A stretch of DNA of 64,000 nucleotides from Haliotis rubra (lineage: Eukaryota). Shown one piece after another: positions 36,861-61,940 of the stretch. Made by a program: the position numbers and the translations under genes. Positions within the stretch are counted from its first letter, which is position 1. Each line of letters opens with the position of its first letter. The stretch covers positions 372,001-436,000 of the forward strand of contig NW_025767588.1 of NCBI RefSeq assembly GCF_003918875.1, given 5' to 3'. Below the pieces are notes generated by a model. It searched no databases, had not been told where the DNA came from, and was given only the letters and a program-made list of their open reading frames with translations.

Positions 36861-37619
36861 CTAGATTAGTTCACAGAACAAGACTGAATTCATCGTCCAG
36901 TGGACAGAGTTAGTGAGTGAGTGAGTTGGGTTTTACAACATTTTCAGAAATACTCCAGCAACATCATAGGGGAAACACAGACATGGGCTTCACCTTCACA
37001 CAATGTACCCAAGTGGGCAGTTGAACCCGGGTCTTCTGCATGATTGGCGAACACTTTAACGACAAGGCTACCCCACCGCTCCTGGTGGACAGCACATTTT
37101 CCTGAAGAGCAGAAGGTCCAGTGTTTCATCCTTGGTCCTGTATTACCAAAAGACTTCTCAAAAATGGGATGAAAGAAGAACTTGCCTGCTTGCAGTCAGT
37201 ATACTCTCTGATTTGTGTATCCATTTTGCCAAACCCTGCCAAGGAATTTCACTGCGCTACCATCATCAGATGTGAATGCACACACACAAAAAAACAGACA
37301 TACAATGACACAAGCACAAAAACAAGACTATTGAAGTCATATATATGACGAAGACGTTAAATGCTATGTAGATGTTGAACCATACAGTGAAATCCCGATC
37401 CAAAATGCAAAACGAAATACTTTGATTTAGACCATGGTAAACACTTCCCCAATCATAAGGTTGAAACAAATCAACATAATTGTAAAGCCACATTAAACTC
37501 ATCAATAGCTACTACATTTGATCATGTAGACATTTTAGCAATAGAGAGATGTCAAGGAGATGCAACGAGAGATGTCAACAGATGAAGACTACGACAACTG
37601 CAACGTTAAGAATACGCAT
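36861..37619 (-). pseudogene. Relic paralog sharing promoter and exon 1 with the Gly/His gene but with a different exon 2
   Basis: Exon 1 MRILNVAVVVV with a 13-bp deletion of the donor; diverged homologous intron; acceptor ttcacat (versus ttcacag); phase-1 frame DDGSAVKFLGRVWQNGYTNQRVY*LQAGKFF...CSSGKCAVH[SINE]WTMNSVLFCELI*. Confidence 0.5.
36908..37084 (-). mobile_element. tRNA-headed SINE
   Basis: Head ggagcggtggggtagcc...cccgggttcaac (A/B-box-like), (ACTC)n tail, 8-bp TSD gtggacag (36900-36907 / 37085-37092). Confidence 0.8.
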
Positions 37620-39728
37620 CCTGCCTGTTACGTTTATCCACGAGAGAATAAACGATTTGAATGTCGCTTTTGTGATTCACCAGACCTTTATATACTTGTG
37701 GTACGGGAAAACAGGATGCTGAATGTACATGCCCACACTGGAAGATTTTAGAAATTAAAATTCCAAAAACACTTTTTACAACTATACAGCGTGAAAAGTG
37801 AATCTTTATTATGTAATTTGGCACGGGACGGTGTCGCCTGCCTCTCTATATTATGCATATCTTCCTGCATAATTATAAAAAGCAAGCTGTGGATTTGTGA
37901 CCTCACCTGGCACCCTGTGGCCAGCTCACTGTTGGGAAGCAATTCAGACTGCATGGTTCATCCAATGCAATTGCAGCTACAGAGGAGAACTGAAAAAATG
38001 AATGGAGAGAGAATGTATAAAATGGACGATAAATGTTGAACTTCACTATTGCGTTAAGTGCAAGTACTGAGTCTAGTGTGCTACCGTTACTGGAGTCAAG
38101 AACGTTCAGCAACGTATGACAAACACTAGATGTTTAATGGCACAGGTTATGGGAAGCAAATTATTCATTTTTCATGATTATACTTAATATGAAGTGGCGT
38201 GTTTCAAGTTAAAGATATATTTTCAAAATTGAAATTCCTACCTTTTATTTCAAAATCACATTGCCTTCTAGAAACGCTTTCCTTTTCTCTTATTAGCAAA
38301 TGTCAAATATATCTATTGGTAACCGTAAGCTCAGGTAGTGCAACAGTTACAAATCTCCCATCTCTTAAATGAAAGAAATCTCATCCCATGTCCCCAGGCA
38401 TTGATGCCACCGATAGCTATCCTGACACGGTCACGGAAGTTGAGGCAGCATGGGCTCGCTATGGCGCCCGAAGTATACATTTGGGTAGACACACAAAAAT
38501 ACAGAATAATACCAGCAGAGTGAAAGCTCAGGACATGTGCACTCACCGGGCACACATTTTCGGTTTCCTGGCCTAAAACACATAATTGTTTTAGGGAAAT
38601 CATGTCAACCCTGTCATCAAACTCTCTCATTTAACTTCATAGAGTGTGTTTTCTTGATAGCGTTTGTGTACGTTAGTGTACTGTGTAGGTGTGTCAGGTT
38701 TGTGTGTATGTGCAAGTGTATATTTGGGTGTGAAAGTTCAGGTTGCGTGAAATGTTATTTGGCTCAAACCTTACAAAATGCTTAAATGTAATTCAGTTTT
38801 CTGAAGAGTCGAAAACGAGCAGCTCTTGAACACCACACGTGGACATGACGACACTAAATGATCAAACGAATACATGGTGTAAGCACTCTCTCAACAGGAA
38901 CATGTACGTGGTGATAGTTTACAACAGGCACTGGCGGGTGCAACTGACAATCTAAACCCTTGTATCACCTCTTGATGATAGCAGGTCGTTAACAGGCATT
39001 GAATGGATATATACGCAAAGTATGGCCTGAAAGCCACGATAAAACACATATGTTGACTAGGTAACCACTTCCTTTTCGGGTAGTGGAAGTTGAACACACC
39101 AACACCAGTTCCGCACCAAATGTCACTTGCTTGAACATATCTCTGCAAACATTCGGCCAAAGTCATTGTGTTAAAAAAGACTGCACTAAATATTGAAAAA
39201 GTATGGTCAGTTTTATTCACCGAATGAATACACTTTTAACAAACACAAAAATCATCCAATCACAGCCATCAGATGATTCTGCCTGCACTGAAGGCTCCCT
39301 AGGAAGAGTTCTTAAATGACGGGATCTGATTTGGTGTAGTATAACTTCTTGGCCTTCCGGGTCATAGTAAAATTCAGGGGAGGTAACTGCGGTATAGGGC
39401 CTTCTAAGGGGAAGTCTGTTTACTTGAACATTCATATTGTGCTAGACTCTTGAAAAAAGAACCATCATTTATATTTGGTTTTGGCCCTTTTATGTAGAAC
39501 GTGTCGTTGCACGGCTGGAAATCAGCACTACCACACAAGCTCCTGTTGTTATCTTCAGTGCATGATTGCACTGACACACGTGTGTCACCTTTCGATTGGA
39601 CGGTTTAAAATATAAGTTAGGTGGACGCCACCTAACCATTCACTCGCATGGTTCAAAAGTAAGTCCTGAATTAGGATTGTACTTGAAAAATATTAAAGCA
39701 AAGAAATCATTACAGTATAAATCACAGC

Positions 39729-39734
39729 TTTATT
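39729..39734 (-). promoter_or_regulatory. Polyadenylation signal of Gly/His gene copy 1 (present in every unit)
   Basis: AATAAA on the minus strand ~113 nt past the stop. Confidence 0.7.
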
Positions 39735-39846
39735 TGTACTTGTTGAGGAATATACAGATTGGTTGGATGCAGCATGGTAAGTGAAATCCACAAATGTGAT
39801 ATCAAATGTCCAGCATTTGATGTGAATATTATGATCCTTGGATCTT

Positions 39847-40477
39847 TCAACCATGGTGTCCGCCTCCTCCATGACCACCTCCTCCATGGCCACCTCCTCC
39901 GTGACCACCTCCTCCGTGGCCTCCTCCATGGCCGCCACCTCCTCCGTGACCACCTCCTCCGTGGCCTCCTCCATGGCCGCCACCTCCATGACCACCACCA
40001 TGGCCGCCGCCTCCATGACCACCACCATGGCCTCCACCTCCATGGCCACCACCACCGTGGCCTCCACCTCCATGGCCACCACCACCATGGCCTCCACCTC
40101 CATGGCCACCACCACCATGGCCTCCACCTCCATGGCCACCACCACCACCATGGCCTCCGCCTCCATGGCCACCACCACCATGGCCACCAAAGACGGAGCC
40201 AAGGAAGACTGTGAAGAATGTAAAGAAACAAATACGTAAGTGGTCATATATATGACAGGACAAATGACCCATACAAAATCCCGCTACCAATCACGATACA
40301 TGATTAGACCATGGTAAACACTTCCCCAATCATAAGGTTGTCAACATAATTGTAAAGCCACATTAAACTCATCAATAGCTACTACATTTGATCATTAGGA
40401 GTTTTAGCAATGAGAGATGTCAACAGATGAGAAAACTTACCCAAGACTACGACAACTGCAACGTTAAGAATACGCAT
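39847..40477 (-). CDS. Secreted Gly/His-only protein copy 1, join(40477..40441,40208..39847), 132 aa
   Basis: MRILNVAVVVVL-G|gtaagt...ttcacag|TC-FLGSVFG followed by 112 aa of 88 G + 24 H; intact. Confidence 0.9.
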
Positions 40478-40544
40478 CCTGCCTGTTACGTTTATCCACG
40501 AGAGAATAAACGATTTGAATGTCGCTTTTGTGATTCACCAGACC

Positions 40545-40552
40545 TTTATATA
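40545..40552 (-). promoter_or_regulatory. TATA box of Gly/His gene (also at 37687, 43405, 46253, 49113, 51968, 54795, 57633)
   Basis: TATATAAAG ~32 nt upstream of an Inr-like CATTC and ~70 nt upstream of the ATG. Confidence 0.8.
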
Positions 40553-42704
40553 CTTGTGGTACGGGAAAACAGGATGCTGAATGTACATGCCCACACTGGA
40601 AGATTTTAGAAATTAAAATTCCAAAAACACTTTTTACAACTATACAGCGTGAAAAGTGAATCTTTATTATGTAATTGGGCACGGGACGGTGTCGCCTGCC
40701 TCTCTATATTATGCATATCTTCCTGCATAATTATAAAAGCAAGCTGTGGATTTGTGACCTCACCTGGCACCCTGTGGCCAGCTCACTGTTGGGAAGCAAT
40801 TCAGACTGCATGGTTCATCCAATGCAATTGCAGCTACAGAGGAGAACTGAAAAATGAATGGAGAGAGAATGTATAAAATGGACGATAAATGTTGAACTTC
40901 ACTATTGCGTTAAGTGCAAGTACTGAGTCTAGTGTGCTACCGTTACTGGAGTCAAGAACGTTCAGCAACGTATGACAAACACTAGATGTTTAATGGCACA
41001 GGTTATGGGAAGCAAATTATTCATTTTTCATGATTATACTTAATATGAAGTGGCGTGTTTCAAGTTAAAGATATATTTTCAAAATTGAAATTCCTACCTT
41101 TTTATTTCAAAATCACATTGCCTTCTAGAAACGCTTTCCTTTTCTCTTATTAGCAAATGTCAAATATATCTATTGGTAACCGTAAGCTCAGGTAGTGCAA
41201 CAGTTACAAATCTCCCATCTCTTAAATGAAAGAAATCTCATCCCATGTCCCCAGGCATTGATGCCACCGATAGCTATCCTGACACGGTCACGGAAGTTGA
41301 GGCAGCATGGGCTCGCTATGGCGCCCGAAGTATACATTTGGGTAGACACACAAAAATACAGAATAATACCAGCAGAGTGAAAGCTCAGGACATGTGCACT
41401 CACCGGGCACACATTTTCGGTTTCCTGGCCTAAAACACATAATTGTTTTTTAGGGAAATCATGTCAACCCTGTCATCAAACTCTCTCATTTAACTTCATA
41501 GAGTGTGTTTTCTTGATAGCGTTTGTGTACGTTAGTGTACTGTGTAGGTGTGTCAGGTTTGTGTGTATGTGCAAGTGTATATTTGGGTGTGAAAGTTCAG
41601 GTTGCGTGAAATGTTATTTGGCTCAAACCTTACAAAATGCTTAAATGTAATTCAGTTTTCTGAAGAGTCGAAAACGAGCAGCTCTTGAACACCACACGTG
41701 GACATGACGACACTAAATGATCAAACGAATACATGGTGTAAGCACTCTCTCAACAGGAACATGTACGTGGTGATAGTTTACAACAGGCACTGGCGGGTGC
41801 AACTGACAATCTAAACCCTTGTATCACCTCTTGATGATAGCAGGTCGTTAACAGGCATTGAATGGATATATACGCAAAGTATGGCCTGAAAGCCACGATA
41901 AAACACATATGTTGACTAGGTAACCACTTCCTTTTCGGGTAGTGGAAGTTGAACACACCAACACCAGTTCCGCACCAAATGTCACTTGCTTGAACATATC
42001 TCTGCAAACATTCGGCCAAAGTCATTGTGTTAAAAAGACTGCACTAAATATTGAAAAAGTATGGTCAGTTTTATTCACCGAATGAATACACTTTTAACAA
42101 ACACAAAAATCATCCAATCACAGCCATCAGATGATTCTGCCTGCACTGAAGGCTCCCTAGGAAGAGTTCTTAAATGACGGGATCTGATTTGGTGTAGTAT
42201 AACTTCTTGGCCTTCCGGGTCATAGTAAAATTCAGGGGAGGTAACTGCGGTATAGGGCCTTCTAAGGGGAAGTCTGTTTACTTGAACATTCATATTGTGC
42301 TAGACTCTTGAAAAAAGAACCATCATTTATATTTGGTTTTGGCCCTTTTATGTAGAACGTGTCGTTGCACGGCTGGAAATCAGCACTACCACACAAGCTC
42401 CTGTTGTTATCTTCAGTGCATGATTGCACTGACACACGTGTGTCACCTTTCGATTGGACGGTTTAAAATATAAGTTAGGTGGACGCCACCTAACCATTCA
42501 CTCGCATGGTTCAAAAGTAAGTCCTGAATTAGGATTGTACTTGAAAAATATTAAAGCAAAGAAATCATTACAGTATAAATCACAGCTTTATTTGTACTTG
42601 TTGAGGAATATACAGATTGGTTGGATGCAGCATGGTAAGTGAAATCCACAAATGTGATATCAAATGTCCAGCATTTGATGTGAATATTATGATCCTTGGA
42701 TCTT

Positions 42705-43337
42705 TCAACCATGGTGTCCGCCTCCTCCATGACCACCTCCTCCATGGCCACCTCCTCCGTGACCACCTCCTCCGTGGCCCTCCTCCATGGCCGCCACCTC
42801 CTCCGTGACCACCTCCTCCGTGGCCTCCTCCATGGCCGCCACCTCCATGACCACCACCATGGCCGCCGCCTCCATGACCACCACCATGGCCGCCGCCTCC
42901 ATGACCACCACCACCGTGGCCCTCCACCTCCATGGCCACCACCACCATGGCCTCCACCTCCATGGCCACCACCACCATGGCCTCCACCTCCATGGCCACC
43001 ACCACCACCATGGCCTCCGCCTCCATGGCCACCACCACCATGGCCACCAAAGACGGAGCCAAGGAAGACTGTGAAGAATGTAAAGAAACAAATACGTAAG
43101 TGGTCATATATATGACAGGACAAATGACCCATACAAAATCCCGCTACCAATCACGATACATGATTAGACCATGGTAAACACTTCCCCAATCATAAGGTTG
43201 TCAACATAATTGTAAAGCCACATTAAACTCATCAATAGCTACTACATTTGATCATTAGGAGTTTTAGCAATGAGAGATGTCAACAGATGAGAAAACTTAC
43301 CCAAGACTACGACAACTGCAACGTTAAGAATACGCAT
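42705..43337 (-). CDS. Gly/His protein copy 2, join(43337..43301,43068..42705); two +1 indels (~42780, ~42921)
   Basis: Same gene structure; extra C in ggccc runs (error or pseudogene). Confidence 0.75.
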
Positions 43338-45565
43338 CCTGCCTGTTACGTTTATCCACGAGAGAATAAACGATTTGAATGTCGCTTTTGTGATTCACCA
43401 GACCTTTATATACTTGTGGTACGGGAAAACAGGATGCTGAATGTACATGCCCACACTGGAAGATTTTAGAAATTAAAATTCCAAAAACACTTTTTACAAC
43501 TATACAGCGTGAAAAGTGAATCTTTATTATGTAATTGGGCACGGGACGGTGTCGCCTGCCTCTCTATATTATGCATATCTTCCTGCATAATTATAAAAAG
43601 CAAGCTGTGGATTTGTGACCTCACCTGGCACCCTGTGGCCAGCTCACTGTTGGGAAGCAATTCAGACTGCATGGTTCATCCAATGCAATTGCAGCTACAG
43701 AGGAGAACTGAAAAAATGAATGGAGAGAGAATGTATAAAATGGACGATAAATGTTGAACTTCACTATTGCGTTAAGTGCAAGTACTGAGTCTAGTGTGCT
43801 ACCGTTACTGGAGTCAAGAACGTTCAGCAACGTATGACAAACACTAGATGTTTAATGGCACAGGTTATGGGAAGCAAATTATTCATTTTTCATGATTATA
43901 CTTAATATGAAGTGGCGTGTTTCAAGTTAAAGATATATTTTCAAAATTGAAATTCCTACCTTTTTATTTCAAAATCACATTGCCTTCTAGAAACGCTTTC
44001 CTTTTCTCTTATTAGCAAATGTCAAATATATCTATTGGTAACCGTAAGCTCAGGTAGTGCAACAGTTACAAATCTCCCATCTCTTAAATGAAAGAAATCT
44101 CATCCCATGTCCCCAGGCATTGATGCCACCGATAGCTATCCTGACACGGTCACGGAAGTTGAGGCAGCATGGGCTCGCTATGGCGCCCGAAGTATACATT
44201 TGGGTAGACACACAAAAATACAGAATAATACCAGCAGAGTGAAAGCTCAGGACATGTGCACTCACCGGGCACACATTTTCGGTTTCCTGGCCTAAAACAC
44301 ATAATTGTTTTTAGGGAAATCATGTCAACCCTGTCATCAAACTCTCTCATTTAACTTCATAGAGTGTGTTTTCTTGATAGCGTTTGTGTACGTTAGTGTA
44401 CTGTGTAGGTGTGTCAGGTTTGTGTGTATGTGCAAGTGTATATTTGGGTGTGAAAGTTCAGGTTGCGTGAAATGTTATTTGGCTCAAACCTTACAAAATG
44501 CTTAAATGTAATTCAGTTTTCTGAAGAGTCGAAAACGAGCAGCTCTTGAACACCACACGTGGACATGACGACACTAAATGATCAAACGAATACATGGTGT
44601 AAGCACTCTCTCAACAGGAACATGTACGTGGTGATAGTTTACAACAGGCACTGGCGGGTGCAACTGACAATCTAAACCCTTGTATCACCTCTTGATGATA
44701 GCAGGTCGTTAACAGGCATTGAATGGATATATACGCAAAGTATGGCCTGAAAGCCACGATAAAACACATATGTTGACTAGGTAACCACTTCCTTTTCGGG
44801 TAGTGGAAGTTGAACACACCAACACCAGTTCCGCACCAAATGTCACTTGCTTGAACATATCTCTGCAAACATTCGGCCAAAGTCATTGTGTTAAAAAGAC
44901 TGCACTAAATATTGAAAAAGTATGGTCAGTTTTATTCACCGAATGAATACACTTTTAACAAACACAAAAATCATCCAATCACAGCCATCAGATGATTCTG
45001 CCTGCACTGAAGGCTCCCTAGGAAGAGTTCTTAAATGACGGGATCTGATTTGGTGTAGTATAACTTCTTGGCCTTCCGGGTCATAGTAAAATTCAGGGGA
45101 GGTAACTGCGGTATAGGGCCTTCTAAGGGGAAGTCTGTTTACTTGAACATTCATATTGTGCTAGACTCTTGAAAAAAGAACCATCATTTATATTTGGTTT
45201 TGGCCCTTTTATGTAGAACGTGTCGTTGCACGGCTGGAAATCAGCACTACCACACAAGCTCCTGTTGTTATCTTCAGTGCATGATTGCACTGACACACGT
45301 GTGTCACCTTTCGATTGGACGGTTTAAAATATAAGTTAGGTGGACGCCACCTAACCATTCACTCGCATGGTTCAAAAGTAAGTCCTGAATTAGGATTGTA
45401 CTTGAAAAATATTAAAGCAAAGAAATCATTACAGTATAAATCACAGCTTTATTTGTACTTGTTGAGGAATATACAGATTGGTTGGATGCAGCATGGTAAG
45501 TGAAATCCACAAATGTGATATCAAATGTCCAGCATTTGATGTGAATATTATGATCCTTGGATCTT

Positions 45566-46185
45566 TCAACCATGGTGTCCGCCTCCTCCATGACCACCTC
45601 CTCCATGGCCACCTCCTCCGTGACCACCTCCTCCGTGGCCTCCTCCATGGCCGCCACCTCCTCCGTGACCACCTCCTCCGTGGCCTCCTCCATGGCCGCC
45701 ACCTCCATGACCACCACCATGGCCGCCGCCTCCATGACCACCACCATGGGCCGCCCACCTCCACCGTGGCCTCCCACCACCATGGCCACCACCCATGGCC
45801 TCCACCTCCATGGCCACCACCACCATGGCCTCCACCTCCATGGCCACCACCACCACCATGGCCTCCGCCTCCATGGCCACCACCACCATGGCCACCAAAG
45901 ACGGAGCCAAGGAAGACTGTGAAGAATGTAAAGAAACAAATACGTAAGTGGTCATATATATGACAGGACAAATGACCCATACAAAATCCCGCTACCAATC
46001 ACGATACATGATTAGACCATGGTAAACACTTCCCCAATCATAAGGTTGTCAACATAATTGTAAAGCCACATTAAACTCATCAATAGCTACTACATTTGAT
46101 CATTAGGAGTTTTAGCAATGAGAGATGTCAACAGATGAGAAAACTTACCCAAGACTACGACAACTGCAACGTTAAGAATACGCAT
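45566..46185 (-). CDS. Gly/His protein copy 3, join(46185..46149,45916..45566); frameshifted/garbled ~45748-45800
   Basis: Same gene structure; cluster of homopolymer indels. Confidence 0.72.
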
Positions 46186-48417
46186 CCTGCCTGTTACGTT
46201 TATCCACGAGAGAATAAACGATTTGAATGTCGCTTTTGTGATTCACCAGACCTTTATATACTTGTGGTACGGGAAAACAGGATGCTGAATGTACATGCCC
46301 ACACTGGAAGATTTTAGAAATTAAAATTCCAAAAACACTTTTTTACAACTATACAGCGTGAAAAGTGAATCTTTATTATGTAATTGGGCACGGGACGGTG
46401 TCGCCTGCCTCTCTATATTATGCATATCTTCCTGCATAATTATAAAAAGCAAGCTGTGGATTTGTGACCTCACCTGGCACCCTGTGGCCAGCTCACTGTT
46501 GGGAAGCAATTCAGACTGCATGGTTCATCCAATGCAATTGCAGCTACAGAGGAGAACTGAAAAAATGAATGGAGAGAGAATGTATAAAATGGACGATAAA
46601 TGTTGAACTTCACTATTGCGTTAAGTGCAAGTACTGAGTCTAGTGTGCTACCGTTACTGGAGTCAAGAACGTTCAGCAACGTATGACAAACACTAGATGT
46701 TTAATGGCACAGGTTATGGGAAGCAAATTATTCATTTTTCATGATTATACTTAATATGAAGTGGCGTGTTTCAAGTTAAAGATATATTTTCAAAATTGAA
46801 ATTCCTACCTTTTTATTTCAAAATCACATTGCCTTCTAGAAACGCTTTCCTTTTCTCTTATTAGCAAATGTCAAATATATCTATTGGTAACCGTAAGCTC
46901 AGGTAGTGCAACAGTTACAAATCTCCCATCTCTTAAATGAAAGAAATCTCATCCCATGTCCCCAGGCATTGATGCCACCGATAGCTATCCTGACACGGTC
47001 ACGGAAGTTGAGGCAGCATGGGCTCGCTATGGCGCCCGAAGTATACATTTGGGTAGACACACAAAAATACAGAATAATACCAGCAGAGTGAAAGCTCAGG
47101 ACATGTGCACTCACCGGGCACACATTTTCGGTTTCCTGGCCTAAAACACATAATTGTTTTTAGGGAAATCATGTCAACCCTGTCATCAAACTCTCTCATT
47201 TAACTTCATAGAGTGTGTTTTCTTGATAGCGTTTGTGTACGTTAGTGTACTGTGTAGGTGTGTCAGGTTTGTGTGTATGTGCAAGTGTATATTTGGGTGT
47301 GAAAGTTCAGGTTGCGTGAAATGTTATTTGGCTCAAACCTTACAAAATGCTTAAATGTAATTCAGTTTTCTGAAGAGTCGAAAACGAGCAGCTCTTGAAC
47401 ACCACACGTGGACATGACGACACTAAATGATCAAACGAATACATGGTGTAAGCACTCTCTCAACAGGAACATGTACGTGGTGATAGTTTACAACAGGCAC
47501 TGGCGGGTGCAACTGACAATCTAAACCCTTGTATCACCTCTTGATGATAGCAGGTCGTTAACAGGCATTGAATGGATATATACGCAAAGTATGGCCTGAA
47601 AGCCACGATAAAACACATATGTTGACTAGGTAACCACTTCCTTTTCGGGTAGTGGAAGTTGAACACACCAACACCAGTTCCGCACCAAATGTCACTTGCT
47701 TGAACATATCTCTGCAAACATTCGGCCAAAGTCATTGTGTAAAAAAAAGACTGCACTAAATATTGAAAAAGTATGGTCAGTTTTATTCACCGAATGAATA
47801 CACTTTTAACAAACACAAAATCATCCAATCACAGCCATCAGATGATTCTGCCTGCACTGAAGGCTCCCTAGGAAGAGTTCTTAAATGACGGGATCTGATT
47901 TGGTGTAGTATAACTATCTTGGCCTTCCGGGTCATAGTAAAATTCAGGGGAGGTAACTGCGGTATAGGGCCTTCTAAGGGGAAGTCTGTTTACTTGAACA
48001 TTCATATTGTGCTAGACTCTTGAAAAAAGAACCATCATTTATATTTGGTTTTGGCCCTTTTATGTAGAACGTGTCGTTGCACGGCTGGAAATCAGCACTA
48101 CCACACAAGCTCCTGTTGTTATCTTCAGTGCATGATTGCACTGACACACGTGTCACCTTTCGATTGGACGGTTTAAAATATAAGTTAGGTGGACGCCACC
48201 TAACCATTCACTCGCATGGTTCAAAAGTAAGTCCTGAATTAGGATTGTACTTGAAAAATATTAAAGCAAAGAAATCATTACAGTATAAATCACAGCTTTA
48301 TTTGTACTTGTTGAGGAATATACAGATTGGTTGGATGCAGCAGCATGGTAAGTGAAATCCACAAATGTGATATCAAATGTCCAGCATTTGATGTGAATAT
48401 TATGATCCTTGGATCTT

Positions 48418-49045
48418 TCAACCATGGTGTCCGCCTCCTCCATGACCACCTCCTCCATGGCCACCTCCTCCGTGACCACCTCCTCCGTGGCCTCCTCCAT
48501 GGCCGCCACCTCCTCCGTGACCACCTCCTCCGTGGCCTCCTCCATGGCCGCCACCTCCATGACCACCACCATGGCCGCCGCCTCCATGACCACCACCATG
48601 GCCGCCGCCTCCATGACCACCACCGTGGCCTCCACCTCCATGGCCACCACCACCATGGCCTCCACCTCCATGGCCACCACCACCATGGCCTCCACCTCCA
48701 TGGCCACCACCACCACCATGGCCTCCGCCTCCATGGCCACCACCACCATGGCCACCAAAGACGGAGCCAAGGAAGACTGTGAAGAATGTAAAGAAACAAA
48801 TACGTAAGTGGTCATATATATGACAGGACAAATGACCCATACAAAATCCCGCTACCAATCACGATACATGATTAGACCATGGTAAACACTTCCCCAATCA
48901 TAAGGTTGTCAACATAATTGTAAAGCCACATTAAACTCATCAATAGCTACTACATTTGATCATTAGGAGTTTTAGCAATGAGAGATGTCAACAGATGAGA
49001 AAACTTACCCAAGACTACGACAACTGCAACGTTAAGAATACGCAT
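48418..49045 (-). CDS. Gly/His protein copy 4, join(49045..49009,48776..48418), 131 aa
   Basis: Intact. Confidence 0.9.
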
Positions 49046-51272
49046 CCTGCCTGTTACGTTTATCCACGAGAGAATAAACGATTTGAATGTCGCTTTTGTG
49101 ATTCACCAGACCTTTATATACTTGTGGTACGGGAAAACAGGATGCTGAATGTACATGCCCACACTGGAAGATTTTAGAAATTAAAATTCCAAAAACACTT
49201 TTTACAACTATACAGCGTGAAAAGTGAATCTTTATTATGTAATTGGGCACGGGACGGTGTCGCCTGCCTCTCTATATTATGCATATCTTCCTGCATAATT
49301 ATAAAAAGCAAGCTGTGGATTTGTGACCTCACCTGGCACCCTGTGGCCAGCTCACTGTTGGGAAGCAATTCAGACTGCATGGTTCATCCAATGCAATTGC
49401 AGCTACAGAGGAGAACTGAAAAAATGAATGGAGAGAGAATGTATAAAATGGACGATAAATGTTGAACTTCACTATTGCGTTAAGTGCAAGTACTGAGTCT
49501 AGTGTGCTACCGTTACTGGAGTCAAGAACGTTCAGCAACGTATGACAAACACTAGATGTTTAATGGCACAGGTTATGGGAAGCAAATTATTCATTTTTCA
49601 TGATTATACTTAATATGAAGTGGCGTGTTTCAAGTTAAAGATATATTTTCAAAATTGAAATTCCTACCTTTTTATTTCAAAATCACATTGCCTTCTAGAA
49701 ACGCTTTCCTTTTCTCTTATTAGCAAATGTCAAATATATCTATTGGTAACCGTAAGCTCAGGTAGTGCAACAGTTACAAATCTCCCATCTCTTAAATGAA
49801 AGAAATCTCATCCCATGTCCCCAGGCATTGATGCCACCGATAGCTATCCTGACACGGTCACGGAAGTTGAGGCAGCATGGGCTCGCTATGGCGCCCGAAG
49901 TATACATTTGGGTAGACACACAAAAATACAGAATAATACCAGCAGAGTGAAAGCTCAGGACATGTGCACTCACCGGGCACACATTTTCGGTTTCCTGGCC
50001 TAAAACACATAATTGTTTTTAGGGAAATCATGTCAACCCTGTCATCAAACTCTCTCATTTAACTTCATAGAGTGTGTTTTCTTGATAGCGTTTGTGTACG
50101 TTAGTGTACTGTGTAGGTGTGTCAGGTTTGTGTGTATGTGCAAGTGTATATTTGGGTGTGAAAGTTCAGGTTGCGTGAAATGTTATTTGGCTCAAACCTT
50201 ACAAAATGCTTAAATGTAATTCAGTTTTCTGAAGAGTCGAAAACGAGCAGCTCTTGAACACCACACGTGGACATGACGACACTAAATGATCAAACGAATA
50301 CATGGTGTAAGCACTCTCTCAACAGGAACATGTACGTGGTGATAGTTTACAACAGGCACTGGCGGGTGCAACTGACAATCTAAACCCTTGTATCACCTCT
50401 TGATGATAGCAGGTCGTTAACAGGCATTGAATGGATATATACGCAAAGTATGGCCTGAAAGCCACGATAAAACACATATGTTGACTAGGTAACCACTTCC
50501 TTTTCGGGTAGTGGAAGTTGAACACACCAACACCAGTTCCGCACCAAATGTCACTTGCTTGAACATATCTCTGCAAACATTCGGCCAAAGTCATTGTGTT
50601 AAAAAGACTGCACTAAATATTGAAAAGTATGGTCAGTTTTATTCACCGAATGAATACACTTTTAACAAACACAAAAATCATCCAATCACAGCCATCAGAT
50701 GATTCTGCCTGCACTGAAGGCTCCCTAGGAAGAGTTCTTAAATGACGGGATCTGATTTGGTGTAGTATAACTTCTTGGCCTTCCGGGTCATAGTAAAATT
50801 CAGGGGAGGTAACTGCGGTATAGGGCCTTCTAAGGGGAAGTCTGTTTACTTGAACATTCATATTGTGCTAGACTCTTGAAAAAAGAACCATCATTTATAT
50901 TTGGTTTTGGCCCTTTTATGTAGAACGTGTCGTTGCACGGCTGGAAATCAGCACTACCACACAAGCTCCTGTTGTTATCTTCAGTGCATGATTGCACTGA
51001 CACACGTGTGTCACCTTTCGATTGGACGGTTTAAAATATAAGTTAGGTGGACGCCACCTAACCATTCACTCGCATGGTTCAAAAGTAAGTCCTGAATTAG
51101 GATTGTACTTGAAAAATATTAAAGCAAAGAAATCATTACAGTATAAATCACAGCTTTATTTGTACTTGTTGAGGAATATACAGATTGGTTGGATGCAGCA
51201 TGGTAAGTGAAATCCACAAATGTGATATCAAATGTCCAGCATTTGATGTGAATATTATGATCCTTGGATCTT

Positions 51273-51900
51273 TCAACCATGGTGTCCGCCTCCTCCATGA
51301 CCACCTCCTCCATGGCCACCTCCTCCGTGACCACCTCCTCCGTGGCCTCCTCCATGGCCGCCACCTCCTCCGTGACCACCTCCTCCGTGGCCTCCTCCAT
51401 GGCCGCCACCTCCATGACCACCACCATGGCCGCCGCCTCCATGACCACCACCATGGCCGCCGCCTCCATGACCACCACCGTGGCCTCCACCTCCATGGCC
51501 ACCACCACCATGGCCTCCACCTCCATGGCCACCACCACCATGGCCTCCACCTCCATGGCCACCACCACCACCATGGCCTCCGCCTCCATGGCCACCACCA
51601 CCATGGCCACCAAAGACGGAGCCAAGGAAGACTGTGAAGAATGTAAAGAAACAAATACGTAAGTGGTCATATATATGACAGGACAAATGACCCATACAAA
51701 ATCCCGCTACCAATCACGATACATGATTAGACCATGGTAAACACTTCCCCAATCATAAGGTTGTCAACATAATTGTAAAGCCACATTAAACTCATCAATA
51801 GCTACTACATTTGATCATTAGGAGTTTTAGCAATGAGAGATGTCAACAGATGAGAAAACTTACCCAAGACTACGACAACTGCAACGTTAAGAATACGCAT
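51273..51900 (-). CDS. Gly/His protein copy 5, join(51900..51864,51631..51273), 131 aa
   Basis: Intact. Confidence 0.9.
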
Positions 51901-54129
51901 CCTGCCTGTTACGTTTATCCACGAGAGAATAAACGATTTGAATGTCGCTTTTGTGATTCACCAGACCTTTATATACTTGTGGTACGGGAAAACAGGATGC
52001 TGAATGTACATGCCCACACTGGAAGATTTTAGAAATTAAAATTCCAAAAACACTTTTTACAACTATACAGCGTGAAAAGTGAATCTTTATTATGTAATTG
52101 GGCACGGGACGGTGTCGCCTGCCTCTCTATATTATGCATATCTTCCTGCATAATTATAAAAAGCAAGCTGTGGATTTGTGACCTCACCTGGCACCCTGTG
52201 GCCAGCTCACTGTTGGGAAGCAATTCAGACTGCATGGTTCATCCAATGCAATTGCAGCTACAGAGGAGAACTGAAAAAATGAATGGAGAGAGAATGTATA
52301 AAATGGACGATAAATGTTGAACTTCACTATTGCGTTAAGTGCAAGTACTGAGTCTAGTGTGCTACCGTTACTGGAGTCAAGAACGTTCAGCAACGTATGA
52401 CAAACACTAGATGTTTAATGGCACAGGTTATGGGAAGCAAATTATTCATTTTTCATGATTATACTTAATATGAAGTGGCGTGTTTCAAGTTAAAGATATA
52501 TTTTCAAAATTGAAATTCCTACCTTTTTATTTCAAAATCACATTGCCTTCTAGAAACGCTTTCCTTTTCTCTTATTAGCAAATGTCAAATATATCTATTG
52601 GTAACCGTAAGCTCAGGTAGTGCAACAGTTACAAATCTCCCATCTCTTAAATGAAAGAAATCTCATCCCATGTCCCCAGGCATTGATGCCACCGATAGCT
52701 ATCATGACACGGTCACGGAAGTTGAGGCAGCATGGGCTCGCTATGGCGCCCGAAGTATACATTTGGGTAGACACACAAAAATACAGAATAATACCAGCAG
52801 AGTGAAAGCTCAGGACATGTGCACTCACCGGGCACACATTTTCGGTTTCCTGGCCTAAAACACATAATTGTTTTTAGGGAAATCATGTCAACCCTGTCAT
52901 CAAACTCTCTCATTTAACTTCATAGAGTGTGTTTTCTTGATAGCGTTTGTGTACGTTAGTGTACTGTGTAGGTGTGTCAGGTTTGTGTGTATGTGCAAGT
53001 GTATATTTGGGTGTGAAAGTTCAGGTTGCGTGAAATGTTATTTGGCTCAAACCTTACAAAATGCTTAAATGTAATTCAGTTTTCTGAAGAGTCGAAAACG
53101 AGCAGCTCTTGAACACCACACGTGGACATGACGACACTAAATGATCAAACGAATACATGGTGTAAGCACTCTCTCAACAGGAACATGTACGTGGTGATAG
53201 TTTACAACAGGCACTGGCGGGTGCAACTGACAATCTAAACCCTTGTATCACCTCTTGATGATAGCAGGTCGTTAACAGGCATTGAATGGATATATACGCA
53301 AAGTATGGCCTGAAAGCCACGATAAAACACATATGTTGACTAGGTAACCACTTCCTTTTCGGGTAGTGGAAGTTGAACACACCAACACCAGTTCCGCACC
53401 AAATGTCACTTGCTTGAACATATCTCTGCAAACATTCGGCCAAAGTCATTGTGTTAAAAAAGACTGCACTAAATATTGAAAAAGTATGGTCAGTTTTATT
53501 CACCGAATGAATACACTTTTAACAAACACAAAAATCATCCAATCACAGCCATCAGATGATTCTGCCTGCACTGAAGGCTCCCTAGGAAGAGTTCTTAAAT
53601 GACGGGATCTGATTTGGTGTAGTATAACTTCTTGGCCTTCCGGGTCATAGTAAAATTCAGGGGAGGTAACTGCGGTATAGGGCCTTCTAAGGGGAAGTCT
53701 GTTTACTTGAACATTCATATTGTGCTAGACTCTTGAAAAAAGAACCATCATTTATATTTGGTTTTGGCCCTTTTATGTAGAACGTGTCGTTGCACGGCTG
53801 GAAATCAGCACTACCACACAAGCTCCTGTTGTTATCTTCAGTGCATGATTGCACTGACACACGTGTGTCACCTTTCGATTGGACGGTTTAAAATATAAGT
53901 TAGGTGGACGCCACCTAACCATTCACTCGCATGGTTCAAAAGTAAGTCCTGAATTAGGATTGTACTTGAAAAATATTAAAGCAAAGAAATCATTACAGTA
54001 TAAATCACAGCTTTATTTGTACTTGTTGAGGAATATACAGATTGGTTGGATGCAGCATGGTAAGTGAAATCCACAAATGTGATATCAAATGTCCAGCATT
54101 TGATGTGAATATTATGATCCTTGGATCTT

Positions 54130-54727
54130 TCAACCATGGTGTCCGCCTCCTCCATGACCACCTCCTCCATGGCCACCTCCTCCGTGACCACCTCCTCCGT
54201 GACCACCTCCTCCGTGGCCTCCTCCATGGCCGCCACCTCCATGACCACCACCATGGCCGCCGCCTCCATGACCACCACCATGGCCGCCGCCTCCATGACC
54301 ACCACCGTGGCCTCCACCTCCATGGCCACCACCACCATGGCCTCCACCTCCATGGCCACCACCACCATGGCCTCCACCTCCATGGCCACCACCACCACCA
54401 TGGCCTCCGCCTCCATGGCCACCACCACCATGGCCACCAAAGACGGAGCCAAGGAAGACTGTGAAGAATGTAAAGAAACAAATACGTAAGTGGTCATATA
54501 TATGACAGGACAAATGACCCATACAAAATCCCGCTACCAATCACGATACATGATTAGACCATGGTAAACACTTCCCCAATCATAAGGTTGTCAACATAAT
54601 TGTAAAGCCACATTAAACTCATCAATAGCTACTACATTTGATCATTAGGAGTTTTAGCAATGAGAGATGTCAACAGATGAGAAAACTTACCCAAGACTAC
54701 GACAACTGCAACGTTAAGAATACGCAT
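54130..54727 (-). CDS. Gly/His protein copy 6, join(54727..54691,54458..54130), 121 aa
   Basis: Intact; in-frame 30-nt shorter than copies 4 and 5. Confidence 0.9.
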
Positions 54728-56954
54728 CCTGCCTGTTACGTTTATCCACGAGAGAATAAACGATTTGAATGTCGCTTTTGTGATTCACCAGACCTTTATA
54801 TACTTGTGGTACGGGAAAACAGGATGCTGAATGTACATGCCCACACTGGAAGATTTTAGAAATTAAAATTCCAAAAACACTTTTTACAACTATACAGCGT
54901 GAAAAGTGAATCTTTATTATGTAATTGGGCACGGGACGGTGTCGCCTGCCTCTCTATATTATGCATATCTTCCTGCATAATTATAAAAGCAAGCTGTGGA
55001 TTTGTGACCTCACCTGGCACCCTGTGGCCAGCTCACTGTTGGGAAGCAATTCAGACTGCATGGTTCATCCAATGCAATTGCAGCTACAGAGGAGAACTGA
55101 AAAAATGAATGGAGAGAGAATGTATAAAATGGACGATAAATGTTGAACTTCACTATTGCGTTAAGTGCAAGTACTGAGTCTAGTGTGCTACCGTTACTGG
55201 AGTCAAGAACGTTCAGCAACGTATGACAAACACTAGATGTTTAATGGCACAGGTTATGGGAAGCAAATTATTCATTTTCATGATTATACTTAATATGAAG
55301 TGGCGTGTTTCAAGTTAAAGATATATTTTCAAAATTGAAATTCCTACCTTTTATTTCAAAATCACATTGCCTTCTAGAAACGCTTTCCTTTTCTCTTATT
55401 AGCAAATGTCAAATATATCTATTGGTAACCGTAAGCTCAGGTAGTGCAACAGTTACAAATCTCCCATCTCTTAAATGAAAGAAATCTCATCCCATGTCCC
55501 CAGGCATTGATGCCACCGATAGCTATCATGACACGGTCACGGAAGTTGAGGCAGCATGGGCTCGCTATGGCGCCCGAAGTATACATTTGGGTAGACACAC
55601 AAAAATACAGAATAATACCAGCAGAGTGAAAGCTCAGGACATGTGCACTCACCGGGCACACATTTTCGGTTTCCTGGCCTAAAACACATAATTGTTTTAG
55701 GGAAATCATGTCAACCCTGTCATCAAACTCTCTCATTTAACTTCATAGAGTGTGTTTTCTTGATAGCGTTTGTGTACGTTAGTGTACTGTGTAGGTGTGT
55801 CAGGTTTGTGTGTATGTGCAAGTGTATATTTGGGTGTGAAAGTTCAGGTTGCGTGAAATGTTATTTGGCTCAAACCTTACAAAATGCTTAAATGTAATTC
55901 AGTTTTCTGAAGAGTCGAAAACGAGCAGCTCTTGAACACCACACGTGGACATGACGACACTAAATGATCAAACGAATACATGGTGTAAGCACTCTCTCAA
56001 CAGGAACATGTACGTGGTGATAGTTTACAACAGGCACTGGCGGGTGCAACTGACAATCTAAACCCTTGTATCACCTCTTGATGATAGCAGGTCGTTAACA
56101 GGCATTGAATGGATATATACGCAAAGTATGGCCTGAAAGCCACGATAAAACACATATGTTGACTAGGTAACCACTTCCTTTTCGGGTAGTGGAAGTTGAA
56201 CACACCAACACCAGTTCCGCACCAAATGTCACTTGCTTGAACATATCTCTGCAAACATTCGGCCAAAGTCATTGTGTTAAAAAAGACTGCACTAAATATT
56301 GAAAAAGTATGGTCAGTTTTATTCACCGAATGAATACACTTTTAACAAACACAAAAATCATCCAATCACAGCCATCAGATGATTCTGCCTGCACTGAAGG
56401 CTCCCTAGGAAGAGTTCTTAAATGACGGGATCTGATTTGGTGTAGTATAACTTCTTGGCCTTCCGGGTCATAGTAAAATTCAGGGGAGGTAACTGCGGTA
56501 TAGGGCCTTCTAAGGGGAAGTCTGTTTACTTGAACATTCATATTGTGCTAGACTCTTGAAAAAAGAACCATCATTTATATTTGGTTTTGGGCCCTTTTTA
56601 TGTAGAACGTGTCGTTGCACGGCTGGAAATCAGCACTACCACACAAGCTCCTGTTGTTATCTTCAGTGCATGATTGCACTGACACACGTGTGTCACCTTT
56701 CGATTGGACGGTTTAAAATATAAGTTAGGTGGACGCCACCTAACCATTCACTCGCATGGTTCAAAAGTAAGTCCTGAATTAGGATTGTACTTGAAAAATA
56801 TTAAAGCAAAGAAATCATTACAGTATAAATCACAGCTTTATTTGTACTTGTTGAGGAATATACAGATTGGTTGGATGCAGCATGGTAAGTGAAATCCACA
56901 AATGTGATATCAAATGTCCAGCATTTGATGTGAATATTATGATCCTTGGATCTT

Positions 56955-57565
56955 TCAACCATGGTGTCCGCCTCCTCCATGGCCACCTCCTCCGTGACCA
57001 CCTCCTCCGTGGCCTCCTCCATGGCCGCGGCCTCCTCCATGGCCACCACCTCCTCCGTGGCCTCCTCCATGGCCACCACCCTCCATGACCACCATGGCCG
57101 CCGCCTCCATGACCACCACCATGGCCGCCGCCTCCATGACCACCACCATGGCCGCCGCCTCCATGACCACCACCATGGCCTCCACCTCCATGGCCACCAC
57201 CACCATGGCCTCCACCTCCATGGCCACCACCACCACCATGGCCTCCGCCTCCATGGCCACCACCACCATGGCCACCAAAGACGGAGCCAAGGAAGACTGT
57301 GAAGAATGTAAAGAAACAAATACGTAAGTGGTCATATATATGACAGGACAAATGACCCATACAAAATCCCGCTACCAATCACGATACATGATTAGACCAT
57401 GGTAAACACTTCCCCAATCATAAGGTTGTCAACATAATTGTAAAGCCACATTAAACTCATCAATAGCTACTACATTTGATCATTAGGAGTTTTAGCAATG
57501 AGAGATGTCAACAGATGAGAAAACTTACCCAAGACTACGACAACTGCAACGTTAAGAATACGCAT
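56955..57565 (-). CDS. Gly/His protein copy 7, join(57565..57529,57296..56955); frameshift ~57080
   Basis: Same gene structure; most divergent repeat order, one apparent Arg codon. Confidence 0.72.
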
Positions 57566-58299
57566 CCTGCCTGTTACGTTTATCCACGAGAGAATAAACG
57601 ATTTGAATGTCGCTTTTGTGATTCACCAGACCTTTATATACTTGTGGTACGGGAAAACAGGATGCTGAATGTACATGCCCACACTGGAAGATTTTAGAAA
57701 TTAAAATTCCAAAAACACTTTTTACAACTATACAGCGTGAAAAGTGAATCTTTATTATGTAATTGGGCACGGGACGGTGTCGCCTGCCTCTCTATATTAT
57801 GCATATCTTCCTGCATAATTATAAAAAGCAAGCTGTGGATTTGTGACCTCACCTGGCACCCTGTGGCCAGCTCACTGTTGGGAAGCAATTCAGACTGCAT
57901 GGTTCATCCAATGCAATTGCAGCTACAGAGGAGAACTGAAAAAATGAATGGAGAGAGAATGTATAAAATGGACGATAAATGTTGAACTTCACTATTGCGT
58001 TAAGTGCAAGTACTGAGTCTAGTGTGCTACCGTTACTGGAGTCAAGAACGTTCAGCAACTTATGACAAACACTAGATGTTTAATGGCACAGGTTATGGGA
58101 AGCAAATTATTCATTTTTCATGATTATACTTAATATGAAGTGGCGTGTTTCAAGTTAAAGATATATTTTCAAAATTGAAATTCCTACCTTTTTATTTCAA
58201 AATCACATTGCCTTCTAGAAACCCTTTCCTTTTCTTTATTAGCAAATGTCAAATATATCTATTGGTAACCGTAAGCTCAGGTAGTGCAACAGTTACAAA

Positions 58300-59187
58300 T
58301 CTCCCATCTCTTAAATGAAAGAAATCTCATCCCATGTCCCCAGGCATTGATGCCACCGATAGCTATCATGACACGGTCACGGAAGTTGAGGCAGCATGGG
58401 CTCGCTATGGCGCCCGAAGTATACATTTGGGTAGACACACAAAAATACAGAATAATACCAGCAGAGTGAAAGCTCAGGACATGTGCACTCACCGGGCACA
58501 CATTTTCGGTTTCCTGGCCTAAAACACATAATTGTTTTAGGGAAATCATGTCAACCCTGTCATCAAACTCTCTCATTTAACTTCATAGAGTGTGTTTTCT
58601 TGATAGCGTTTGTGTACGTTAGTGTACTGTGTAGGTGTGCCAGGTTTGTGTGTATGTGCAAGTGTATATTTGGGTGTGAAAGTTCAGGTTGCGTTAAATG
58701 TTAGTTGGCTCAAACCTTACAAAATGCTTAAATGTAATACAGTTTTCTGAAGAGTCGAAAACGAGCAGCTCTTGAACACCACACGTGGACATGAGTGCCC
58801 TAAACTATGAATTATAATCATTAACTTATTTTGAACCGAACCCCGATAACAAGTTGAAAATCTGTAAGACATCGCCAAGGCCAGACATCTCACAAAGGCA
58901 ATGAAGAGCGTCAGGTGAGCTTCAAACGTTTGAACTATATCAGCCAATGTCGTCAAACACAAATGCACATCACTGTCTTGGAATCCTTCCAACATTAAGG
59001 CATTCATCGTCATCAAGGAGAGAGTGTCGATTACAATATCCACAAAATTGAAGTAGTTCAACTGTCATGATGACCTTGAATTCATTTTGGAAAGAACATA
59101 TACGTTTATCGAGTTTCCAATAATGCCCAGTAAACACAGTGCGATCCCAACACATATACATACTTTTGTGAAGTATACAGATCCCAT
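58300..59187 (-). pseudogene. Rhodopsin-like (class A) GPCR pseudogene, intronless; 3' part duplicated in every array unit
   Basis: TM1 CVGIALCLLGIIGNSINVYVL, in-frame stop at 59065, TM2 NFVDIVID, TM3 LTLFIAFVRCLAL (DRY-like); weaker TM6-like AFTLLVLFCIFVCLPK near 58420-58473. Confidence 0.7.
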
Positions 59188-59589
59188 GATGCTGTGTGTG
59201 CTGAGCTGTGCGTTATATATACAAACTTCCTTTGTTACAGAACGTATCTTCATACTTCCCGAATGTACACATGCCTGGTGTGTTGGCTGAACGATCAACT
59301 CTGCGCCGTGCCTCGTTGTATGCACAAAGAACTTAATTAAGCCCTCCTTATATATTTGCAATGATAGGTTTTCAACACGTACATAAAACTTCTCGTGGTG
59401 ACCATATGATCCTTTGACTCATACAAAACGAGAAAATGATTGGAATCCATGTTGACGTTATGGTGATAAATGCTCATTTTTAAAATAAACCACTGATGTT
59501 ACAAAATCAAGGCTGTACACGTATGGCCCTAGAATGTTTAATGTTGAAGTTATTGGTGAATGTGTTTATGTGTGTATTTTGTTTCCCAA

Positions 59590-60480
59590 ACATAATTTGA
59601 TCATGTTGTTTTCACACCTTCCATATGGGTCATGTTCCTTCAGATAGCCCCATATGTCAACACAGTGGAGAAGCTGACAAGGACAGTTCACGTTGTTGGC
59701 GTTTAAAAAGTTCCTTATGACAATGGTTGTACGAGGGGTGACATTGTCCTGTTGAAACAATATACGTCGGTGCTGCTGGATGTGAGGTGAGGTGAGGTGA
59801 GGTGAAATTGGGTTTAACGTCGTGCTTGAGAATAGTTCGCTCATATGACGACGTGCATGCGTGTGTATGTTTATGTGCGGCTGCTTGTACTAGCCCAGAC
59901 TTAAGCTGATTTTATAGTGCTAGCCCACTGAGATACCATGCCGCAGTGAAGCATGAATACCCCACTCAGACACATTATACTGACTCGAGCCGACCAGTCC
60001 TTGTTGTACCCATTAATGCCGAGCGCCAGGCAGGGGACCAACAAGTACCATATTTTAACGTCTTTTGGTATGACGCGGTCGGGGATCGAACCCGCGACCT
60101 TCCGCTCTCCGGGCGGACGCTCTAACCACTGCTGGATGTAGTAGAAGTAGTCTCAAAAGTCATCGATATGAAACAACCAGACTGTTCCCACAAATAAGTC
60201 CCCAATTTATCAAACAATATCACGTTCACGGCGCTGCCCTTGGACACGTACAACGCCATCACATTTGTTCAGTTGAAACCTGCTTTTTTATCCCTGCATC
60301 ATCTCGATCGTCTACGACGATGTTCATGCTTCAACGTAGTGACCTTGAACCACCGACAGGCTCTGAGACGGAGTCGTCTGGACAATGTCCTTCTGTTGAT
60401 TGTTAAACATTATATCATACAATGTGCGTTCTTTCCCCACCTGAAGTTGAGACTTTTCATGACAGACCTGTACATTTGAC
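59590..60480 (-). mobile_element. Degraded Tc1 transposase remnant interrupted by a SINE
   Basis: SRFQLNKCDGVVRV (DESRF...DGR-like) and ILFQQDNVTPRT...FLNANNV (FQQDNARPH-like). Confidence 0.7.
59784..60128 (-). mobile_element. tRNA-headed SINE, full length
   Basis: Head gtggttagagcgtccgcc...ggtcgcgggttcgatcccc; (CACCT)n tail; 11-bp TSD ctgctggatgt (59773-59783 / 60129-60139). Confidence 0.85.
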
Positions 60481-61689: not shown

Positions 61690-61940
61690 GTTAATGTTAA
61701 CGTCAACGTATTGCCTTTTCCAGTGCATTCTCCAGACATGAGCCCCATTGAACATTTCTTGGATCATCTTCATCGTCAGCTGAGACAGCAGGTACAACCT
61801 CCTGCGAACCGACAGGAACTTGAACAGTCTCTCTTGAACTTACGGAACAGGATTCCTGCTGACGTCATCCGCTGACTGATGACGTCATTGAGGACGACGT
61901 GTTGGCGTGTATGGATGCCCAGGGTGGTCACACTCTCTAT
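61690..61940 (+). mobile_element. Tc1 transposase C-terminal remnant
   Basis: VLPFPVHSPDMSPIEHFLDHLHRQLRQQVQPPANRQEL...IPADVIR. Confidence 0.75.

Follow-up and report, generated by a model that had tools for sequence, protein, structure and literature searches.

Tandem arrays of glycine/histidine-peptide genes in blacklip abalone: an array that is probably old and still turning over

A stretch of 64,000 nucleotides (nt) from the blacklip abalone Haliotis rubra (contig NW_025767588.1, positions 372,001 to 436,000 of the forward strand; the whole stretch is called the window here and its own numbering is used throughout) carries a head-to-tail array of small genes, each predicted to encode a leader followed by a peptide made only of glycine (Gly) and histidine (His). 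It is likely that this is an old tandem array still turning over, with some 17–34 copies per haploid genome and a secreted Gly/His product, and not the outcome of a one-off seven-fold burst. The evidence comes from the depth of the array in short-read contigs of three abalone species, from a unit-to-unit junction and species-specific differences seen in those species, from diverged copies at both array edges and from a second, paralogous array elsewhere in the assembly.

Layout of the array and its genes

Self-BLAST of one unit against the window, together with repeat finding, placed the array at 37423–58794 with one minus-strand gene per unit. Seven full units (2878, 2860, 2848, 2860, 2855, 2827 and 2838 nt) and a partial unit of 1406 nt (0.49 unit, 57389–58794) gave eight collinear matches, the units being 98.4–99.7% identical to unit 2, and no N bases were present in the window. 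An internal 15-nt repeat, reported seven times by Tandem Repeats Finder, is the reverse complement of a Gly-Gly-His-type coding repeat and the genes therefore lie on the minus strand. Read in the sense of the genes, the array has the form (X-Y)x7 followed by X', where X comprises 1.23 kilobases (kb) of upstream DNA, the promoter, exon 1 and 176 nt of the intron, and Y the remaining intron, exon 2, the 3' untranslated region and about 0.96 kb of downstream DNA. Eight identical promoter/exon-1 cassettes (ATGs at 57565, 54727, 51900, 49045, 46185, 43337, 40477 and 37619) and seven copies of exon 2 (starting at 57296, 54458, 51631, 48776, 45916, 43068 and 40208) were found. A 401-nt piece of the unit (58300–58700) occurs exactly eight times in the whole 1.378-gigabase (Gb) assembly, always within the array. 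The intergenic part of each unit contains a dispersed-repeat copy (unit positions 958–1320) with many 73–81% matches on unrelated contigs. The features of the array are as follows.

37423–58794, minus strand: tandem array, seven full units (2827–2878 nt) and a 1406-nt partial unit
37423–37694, minus strand: eighth promoter/exon-1 cassette at the left array edge (ATG 37619)
39729–40552, minus strand: gene A, intact, 132 amino acids (aa); ATG 40477, exon 2 40208–39847
42587–43412, minus strand: gene B, frameshifted twice; ATG 43337, exon 2 43068–42705
45448–46260, minus strand: gene C, frameshifted in the GGH repeat as assembled; ATG 46185, exon 2 45916–45566
48297–49120, minus strand: gene D, intact, 131 aa, protein identical to that of gene E; ATG 49045, exon 2 48776–48418
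51155–51975, minus strand: gene E, intact, 131 aa; ATG 51900, exon 2 51631–51273
54012–54802, minus strand: gene F, intact, 121 aa; ATG 54727, exon 2 54458–54130
56837–57640, minus strand: gene G (TATA box to poly(A) signal); ATG 57565, exon 2 57296–56955, frameshift at about 57078–57081
58640–58794, minus strand: right (gene-upstream) array edge, with a sharp break at 58794|58795
55956–55957, no strand: unit-to-unit junction, with equivalents in every unit
41841–42203, no strand: dispersed-repeat copy in the intergenic part of each unit (coordinates of unit 2)

Outside the array a single near-identical stretch of the unit was found, an isolated 547-nt fragment on another contig (C2717:71739–72286) that is 96% identical to part of the array spacer (unit positions 1042–1588).

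Each complete gene has a TATA-box motif, TATATAAAG, 75 nt upstream of the ATG and an AATAAA signal about 113 nt past the stop codon. Exon 1 contributes 37 coding nt and ends G|GTAAGT, a phase-1 intron of 232 nt (GT..AG, ending CAG) splits the leader, and exon 2 contributes 329–364 coding nt. An earlier note, made from the sequence alone, had described a recent seven-fold amplification of this whole transcription unit, and all points of its description of the array that can be read from the sequence were borne out: the seven units each carry the TATA box, exon 1, the 232-nt intron, exon 2 and AATAAA, four copies read through (genes A, D, E and F, 121–132 aa), and the units differ mainly by homopolymer indels and by the number of exon-2 repeats. 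In an alignment of the seven full units, 109 of the 145 variable columns were gap columns, mostly reflecting homopolymer length, and only 4 columns outside exon 2 and the diverged left edge were substitutions. At least five different exon-2 structures occur among the assembled copies, with in-frame differences of 3, 15 and 30 nt. The 101–112 codons of the mature part are all GGT, GGA, GGC, CAT or CAC, with variation confined to third positions.

Copy number and the quality of the assembled copies

Four public runs were available as short-read contigs with one mean word depth per contig, and were compared over window positions 55800–61700, which cover one unit and 2.9 kb of flank. Within the unit, depth was even over gene and spacer alike, and the contigs of each run added up to about 1 Gb, so the four runs were taken as genomic DNA. 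In the assembly, each flank piece has only one copy of high identity.

X1, organism A (blacklip abalone): array depth 4304–5539, flank depth 119–168, ratio about 34
X3, organism A, second sample: array depth 205–225, flank depth 5.4–7.5, ratio about 34
X4, organism B: array depth 2344–2701, flank depth 53–64, ratio about 43
X7, organism C: array depth 1277–1394, flank depth 18 (one contig), ratio about 74

Both blacklip abalone samples thus gave the same ratio, and the ratios differed among species (34, 43 and about 74). The number of copies per haploid genome is probably roughly 17–34 in blacklip abalone, with a lowest defensible bound of about 9–10, and is estimated at 21–43 in organism B and 37–74 in organism C. 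The amplification claimed in the earlier note is therefore seven-fold in the sense that seven full units are assembled, while short-read depth suggests a higher number in the genome. The 7.5 assembled units are certainly not an over-count and are probably an under-count, arising from collapse, purging or a short haplotype. A unit variant at 58368, carried by assembly units 6–8, was found at about 50:50 in X3 and was not seen in the X1 contigs, a frequency difference that hints at polymorphism of the array within the species.

The blacklip abalone assembly rests on about 30x Nanopore coverage and was polished with Racon and Pilon before treatment with Purge Haplotigs (PMC6774278), a procedure that would account for both homopolymer errors and array collapse. 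Some unit-private indels, for example at 58235 and 56595, were contradicted by all short-read runs. Three of the seven genes (the intact four encode 132, 131, 131 and 121 aa) are frameshifted inside the GGH repeat, each lesion being placed in a G run or within the repeat. Specifically, gene B has an extra G in GGAGGGCC both times and gene G an extra G in a G run at about 57079, a base that was absent from most of the short-read depth in X3 (168/182) and X4 (2096/2150) but from only 63/7749 in X1. The three frameshifts are probably assembly errors, although the short-read evidence on gene G is mixed.

Age of the array, its edges and a second array

The organism B and organism C arrays, which are 1–6% diverged, hold the identical tandem junction in essentially all copies. 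In organism B the junction 55956|55957 is bridged by a 654-nt X4 contig at a depth of 2551, and in organism C by a 206-nt X7 contig (55829–56011) at a depth of 1323, in both cases the full depth of the array. The units differed from those of blacklip abalone by 1.3–4.6% in organism B and 2.2–6.6% in organism C, and the flank by 2.6–5.9% and 8–12%, respectively. At many sites (such as 55897, 55972 and 56008) a letter other than that of the assembly took the whole array depth in X4 or X7 and a depth of 0 in X1 and X3. Within the unit, the gene and promoter were two to three times better conserved between species than the spacer, differing by 1.3% (organism B) and 2.2–2.9% (organism C) against 2.5–4.6% and 5.0–6.6% for the intergenic parts.

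Both edge copies partly escape homogenization, divergence being higher there than inside the array. On the left, the eighth cassette matches the others exactly as far as exon 1, after which a 13-nt deletion has removed the GT splice donor; the last 274 nt of the array are only 89% identical to the other units. A degenerate Gly/His exon 2 was looked for behind this cassette and was not found, BLAST similarity stopping about 274 nt into the relic with only about 80 nt of faint intron-like similarity beyond. At the right edge the outermost copy has 6 private substitutions, 4 of them in the outermost 155 nt, and the interior allele was seen at these sites at full array depth in the short-read contigs. 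A word length of 31 (k=31) predicts a branch at 58795 minus 30, and in both X1 and X3 a flank contig has its start there, at 58765, which confirms the boundary 58794|58795 by evidence that does not depend on the Nanopore assembly.

A second array of the same kind of gene was found elsewhere in the assembly. The assembly contains 20 promoter/exon-1 cassettes, 8 of the window array and 12 of a paralogous type located at C2199:990959–1003974, where the array runs off the contig end, at C2535:1–5000, where it occupies the contig start, and over the whole of the contigs C2029 and C2049. This array also breaks the assembly. Its unit is 2.52 kb long (periods of 2513–2527 nt) and its copies are 99.5–99.96% identical to each other; compared with the window array they are 72–76% identical over the gene region, and the spacer is not alignable. 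The paralogs keep a near-identical leader, the intron phase, the splice sites, the TATA box, the Gly/His-only mature part, the His-His-Gly (HHG) stop and AATAAA, and all five copies on C2199 and one on C2535 are intact (93–112 aa). The short all-array contigs C2029 and C2049 carry many frameshifts and may represent a third, decayed subfamily or poorly polished sequence. In X1 the paralog-type base at window position 57567 had a summed depth of 20213 over two contigs, compared with 5539 for the window-array type, which hints at an even higher copy number for the paralogous array.

The uniform interior, the divergence between species and the ragged edges are therefore read as concerted evolution, or continuing turnover, of an old array. 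The amplification had been called recent in the earlier note; this is not upheld by the junction shared with two other species, the species-fixed differences and the diverged edges, and it is the copies that coalesce recently while the locus itself is old. Unequal crossing-over and gene conversion between units would keep the interior copies near-identical within a species while the whole array diverges between species, and the terminal left copy, lying partly outside this homogenization, would in this way have lost its splice donor and exon 2. The (X-Y)n-X' layout would be the expected outcome of unequal exchange between X segments, and the second array would evolve likewise, independently of the window array. 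Tandem multigene arrays under concerted evolution are well known for histone, 5S and ribosomal DNA and small nuclear RNA genes, and the antifreeze-protein arrays of fish provide an example of dosage. With the former the abalone arrays share the head-to-tail arrangement of complete transcription units, near-identity within and divergence between species, diverged edge copies, a copy number that varies with species and under-assembly; they differ in that the product is a small secreted low-complexity peptide and in that two separate arrays evolve independently.

Several points weigh against this reading. Depth was taken from contigs and not from raw reads, and summed contig depth is not equal to copy number. 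Two alleles of equal depth were present at flank sites in X3 (61154 and 61553) and X4 (60723), so the flank contigs may be haplotype-specific, in which case the ratios are halved. In X1, alternative flank contigs with a depth of 340–443 could bring the estimate down to about 9–10, near the assembled number. Where reads map to several copies, polishing with Pilon can give the assembled copies a greater likeness than they really have. Three of the seven assembled copies are frameshifted, and the short-read counter-evidence concerns one of them only and is mixed. Splicing, secretion, metal binding and amidation are predictions from the sequence. Lastly, an identical junction in three species is also expected if an X-Y-X' ancestor expanded in parallel in each of them.

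This last scenario, in which X/X' unequal crossing-over would have driven a separate recent expansion in each species and recreated the same junction each time, is the alternative that fares best, though we consider it unlikely. It predicts the identical Y-to-X junction, fits the (X-Y)n-X' layout with its old, decayed terminal X' and accommodates the different depth ratios of the three species (34, 43 and 74). It also requires three independent expansions to dozens of copies, with the paralogous array behaving likewise, whereas continuous turnover explains the same data by one process; the two models differ in history and not in mechanism. A recent lineage-specific burst of one gene to about seven copies under dosage selection, with the assembly showing the true number, appears improbable. 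The 98.4–99.7% identity of the units and the near lack of substitutions outside exon 2 would fit such a burst, as would the highest X1 baseline (reference-like plus alternative flank contigs, about 460–560), which lowers the ratio to about 9–10. Against it, the X3 and X4 baselines give about 20 or more copies per haploid genome, organisms B and C share the junction at 40–70 times the flank depth in units that are 1.3–6.6% diverged, both array edges are more diverged than the interior, and a second, internally uniform array exists.

A satellite-like repeat without a working gene, its frames intact only through the youth of the copies, is more improbable still. The three frameshifted copies and the lack of relatives in the protein databases searched would agree with it, and it is opposed by the codon pattern (positions 1 and 2 invariant, position 3 variable), by the two- to three-fold better conservation of gene and promoter than of spacer between species and by the presence of leader, splice sites, TATA box, Gly/His frame, HHG stop and poly(A) signal in both arrays despite a difference of about 25% in their DNA. 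Judged by this conservation of every gene signal, by the codons and by the between-species constraint, the gene appears to be real. The weakest alternative, inflation of one or two real copies to seven by the Nanopore assembler, has a negligible probability: most unit differences do resemble homopolymer errors and several (58235, 56595) are contradicted by all short-read contigs, yet the word depth of the array is at least 9 times, and more likely 17–34 times, that of the flank in two blacklip abalone samples, and at least five exon-2 structures exceed what a diploid with one or two copies could supply. An assembly expansion would have left a depth ratio of 1–2, whereas the array contigs have 34–74 times the word depth of the flank; it is thus refuted in practice by short-read contig depth, and the array stands as the earlier note took it to be, a true amplification.

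The surroundings of the array are themselves rich in repeats. To its left, the following neighboring exon was identified on the opposite strand, tail-to-tail with the array.

36261–36758, plus strand: cadherin-domain exon (PF00028, E value 1.6e-9)

Directly before this exon lie a GC-skewed 43-nt minisatellite (about 33 copies) and a 68-nt repeat (34573–36048 and 36058–36232), and between it and the eighth cassette lies a transfer-RNA-like segment resembling a short interspersed nuclear element, followed by a CACT/CTCA microsatellite (36940–37100, minus strand). Further left are a G-rich minisatellite with about 43 copies of a 32-nt unit and a higher-order period of 96 nt (18374–19755; guanine-cytosine (GC) content 52% compared with about 40% around it) and a 251-nt segment tandemly duplicated at 98% identity (32175–32680). 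On the right, the flank at 58800–59380 has dozens of 66–79% copies clustered on the contigs C299, C2385, C1682, C1441 and C2717, and may belong to another large repeated gene or segment family. It is followed by a very high-copy dispersed repeat (59740–60133; summed X1 contig depth about 2x10^7), which is absent at this site in organism C, where a contig joins 59777 directly to 60134. The GC content drops to 28% at 62001–64000, and the contig ends at the equivalent of window position 64379, 5.6 kb beyond the array, so that the locus lies at an assembly break.

The predicted peptide and known Gly/His proteins

The predicted product consists of a 20-residue hydrophobic leader, judged by eye, and a mature part of 101–112 residues (about 8 kilodaltons (kDa)) that is 100% Gly and His (79% Gly, 21% His) in GGGGH/GGGH repeats with a C-terminal HHG. 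Each chain has 22–24 imidazoles and no lysine or arginine. From its sequence the peptide is predicted to be secreted and intrinsically disordered, polycationic and soluble at acidic pH (below pH 6), and near-neutral and assembly-prone at the pH of seawater. Removal of the leader would make Gly-His the N-terminus; in the paralog a canonical Ala-x-Ala site precedes this pair. The Gly-His N-terminus and the imidazoles could together bind zinc (Zn), copper (Cu) or nickel, and the C-terminal Gly may act as an amidation donor.

A Pfam scan with exon 2 of both arrays returned no family. A word-based protein search with exon 2 gave a single match, to an unrelated 201-aa protein with a GGGGH tract, and the composition correction of HMMER makes this search near-blind to such a sequence; a protein atlas gave no usable match, low complexity defeating searches of this type. 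The open frames of genes A, E and F and one paralogous frame, taken from the genomic sequence, had no exact match in the protein collection. Literature searches for GGGGH-type repeats and for histidine-rich proteins of abalone or Haliotis found no description of this peptide, and a paper on the shell proteome of the greenlip abalone mentions nothing resembling one. The peptide is expected to be missing from tryptic shell and tissue proteomes because it has no lysine or arginine, and to have been missed by gene annotation because it is of pure low complexity and lies in collapsed repeats.

Peptides and proteins dominated by these two residues are known from several sources, among them the insect antifungal peptides holotricin 3 and tenecin 3. 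The shepherins I and II of the plant Capsella bursa-pastoris are peptides of 28–38 residues cut from a precursor, with about two thirds Gly, 20–29% His, GGH-type repeats and some tyrosine, and shepherin I binds Zn(II) and Cu(II), Zn triggering both fibrils and antifungal activity (PMC10698721). Like them, the abalone peptide is predicted to be secreted and is almost wholly Gly/His in short repeats; it is longer and made of two amino acids only, has a longer Gly spacing (GGGGH) and is encoded by dozens of gene copies, and the low complexity leaves no homology demonstrable. Two metal-hardened jaw proteins of polychaete worms are likewise rich in both residues (PMC9999432, PMC9465683): Glycera MTP contains 49% Gly and 40% His, and Nereis Nvjp-1 contains 36% Gly and 27% His in a sequence with [GGH] and [GH]n repeats. 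Both are secreted and disordered, bind Cu or Zn, and assemble when triggered by metal or by pH (PMC9999432). The abalone peptide shares with these proteins the dominance of Gly and His, at 100% of the mature part and thus above a criterion of about 60%, and the predicted secretion and disorder. It differs in size and composition, at about 8 kDa and Gly/His only compared with 30–40 kDa and the presence of aspartate, glutamate, lysine and alanine (MTP) or tyrosine and aspartate (Nvjp-1), and the worm proteins have a higher fraction of His. By composition and repeat type it thus appears nearer to the shepherin class, while its gene dosage looks like that of a bulk product.

A further likeness concerns gene organization. 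In the SpTransformer (Sp185/333) family exon 1 encodes the leader, and Gly-rich as well as His-rich regions occur in the proteins. In the purple sea urchin the family comprises about 50 small two-exon genes in a tight cluster, with repeats in exon 2, and the number of members probably varies among individuals (PMC5491942). The abalone genes are likewise small, two-exon and clustered with exon-2 repeats, a likeness for which homology is not claimed. SpTransformer genes differ from them in being diversified rather than homogenized and in encoding proteins that are not polymers of two residues.

Many gene copies would suit production in bulk, and selection for dosage is a reasonable inference. 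A metal-crosslinked or pH-triggered material is the role we would put forward, with slightly less than even confidence, and a shepherin-like antimicrobial or antifungal function in host defense is a somewhat less probable candidate; some other function altogether is less probable than either. The broader proposal is a tentative one, namely that abalones may bulk-produce a polymer of about 100 residues of Gly and His only, from at least two concertedly evolving arrays of dozens of genes, as a pH- or metal-switched material or coating. Roles that would fall under such a switched polymer include Zn/Cu-hardening of the radula or jaw, a component of adhesive or mucus, and a metal-activated antimicrobial layer.

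Both tandem arrays under concerted evolution and Gly/His-rich secreted peptides are known kinds, and what is new is their combination: a two-amino-acid mature peptide encoded by two independently homogenized arrays of dozens of genes and conserved across abalone species. For the blacklip abalone genome this means that copy-number and "pseudogene" calls need read-level checks, a 30x Nanopore assembly appearing to under-count such arrays and to insert false frameshifts. The locus offers a clean invertebrate case of concerted evolution in a protein-coding array, in which edge effects and the decay of a terminal copy can be seen, and abalone species have its very high gene dosage in common. Should the peptide be produced, it would be the most extreme natural Gly/His protein found, at 100% of the mature chain compared with 89% for Glycera MTP and about 96% for shepherin I, and would provide a simple, synthesizable model for histidine-metal and pH-switch chemistry, of use for biomaterials or for host defense in a farmed animal where disease matters.

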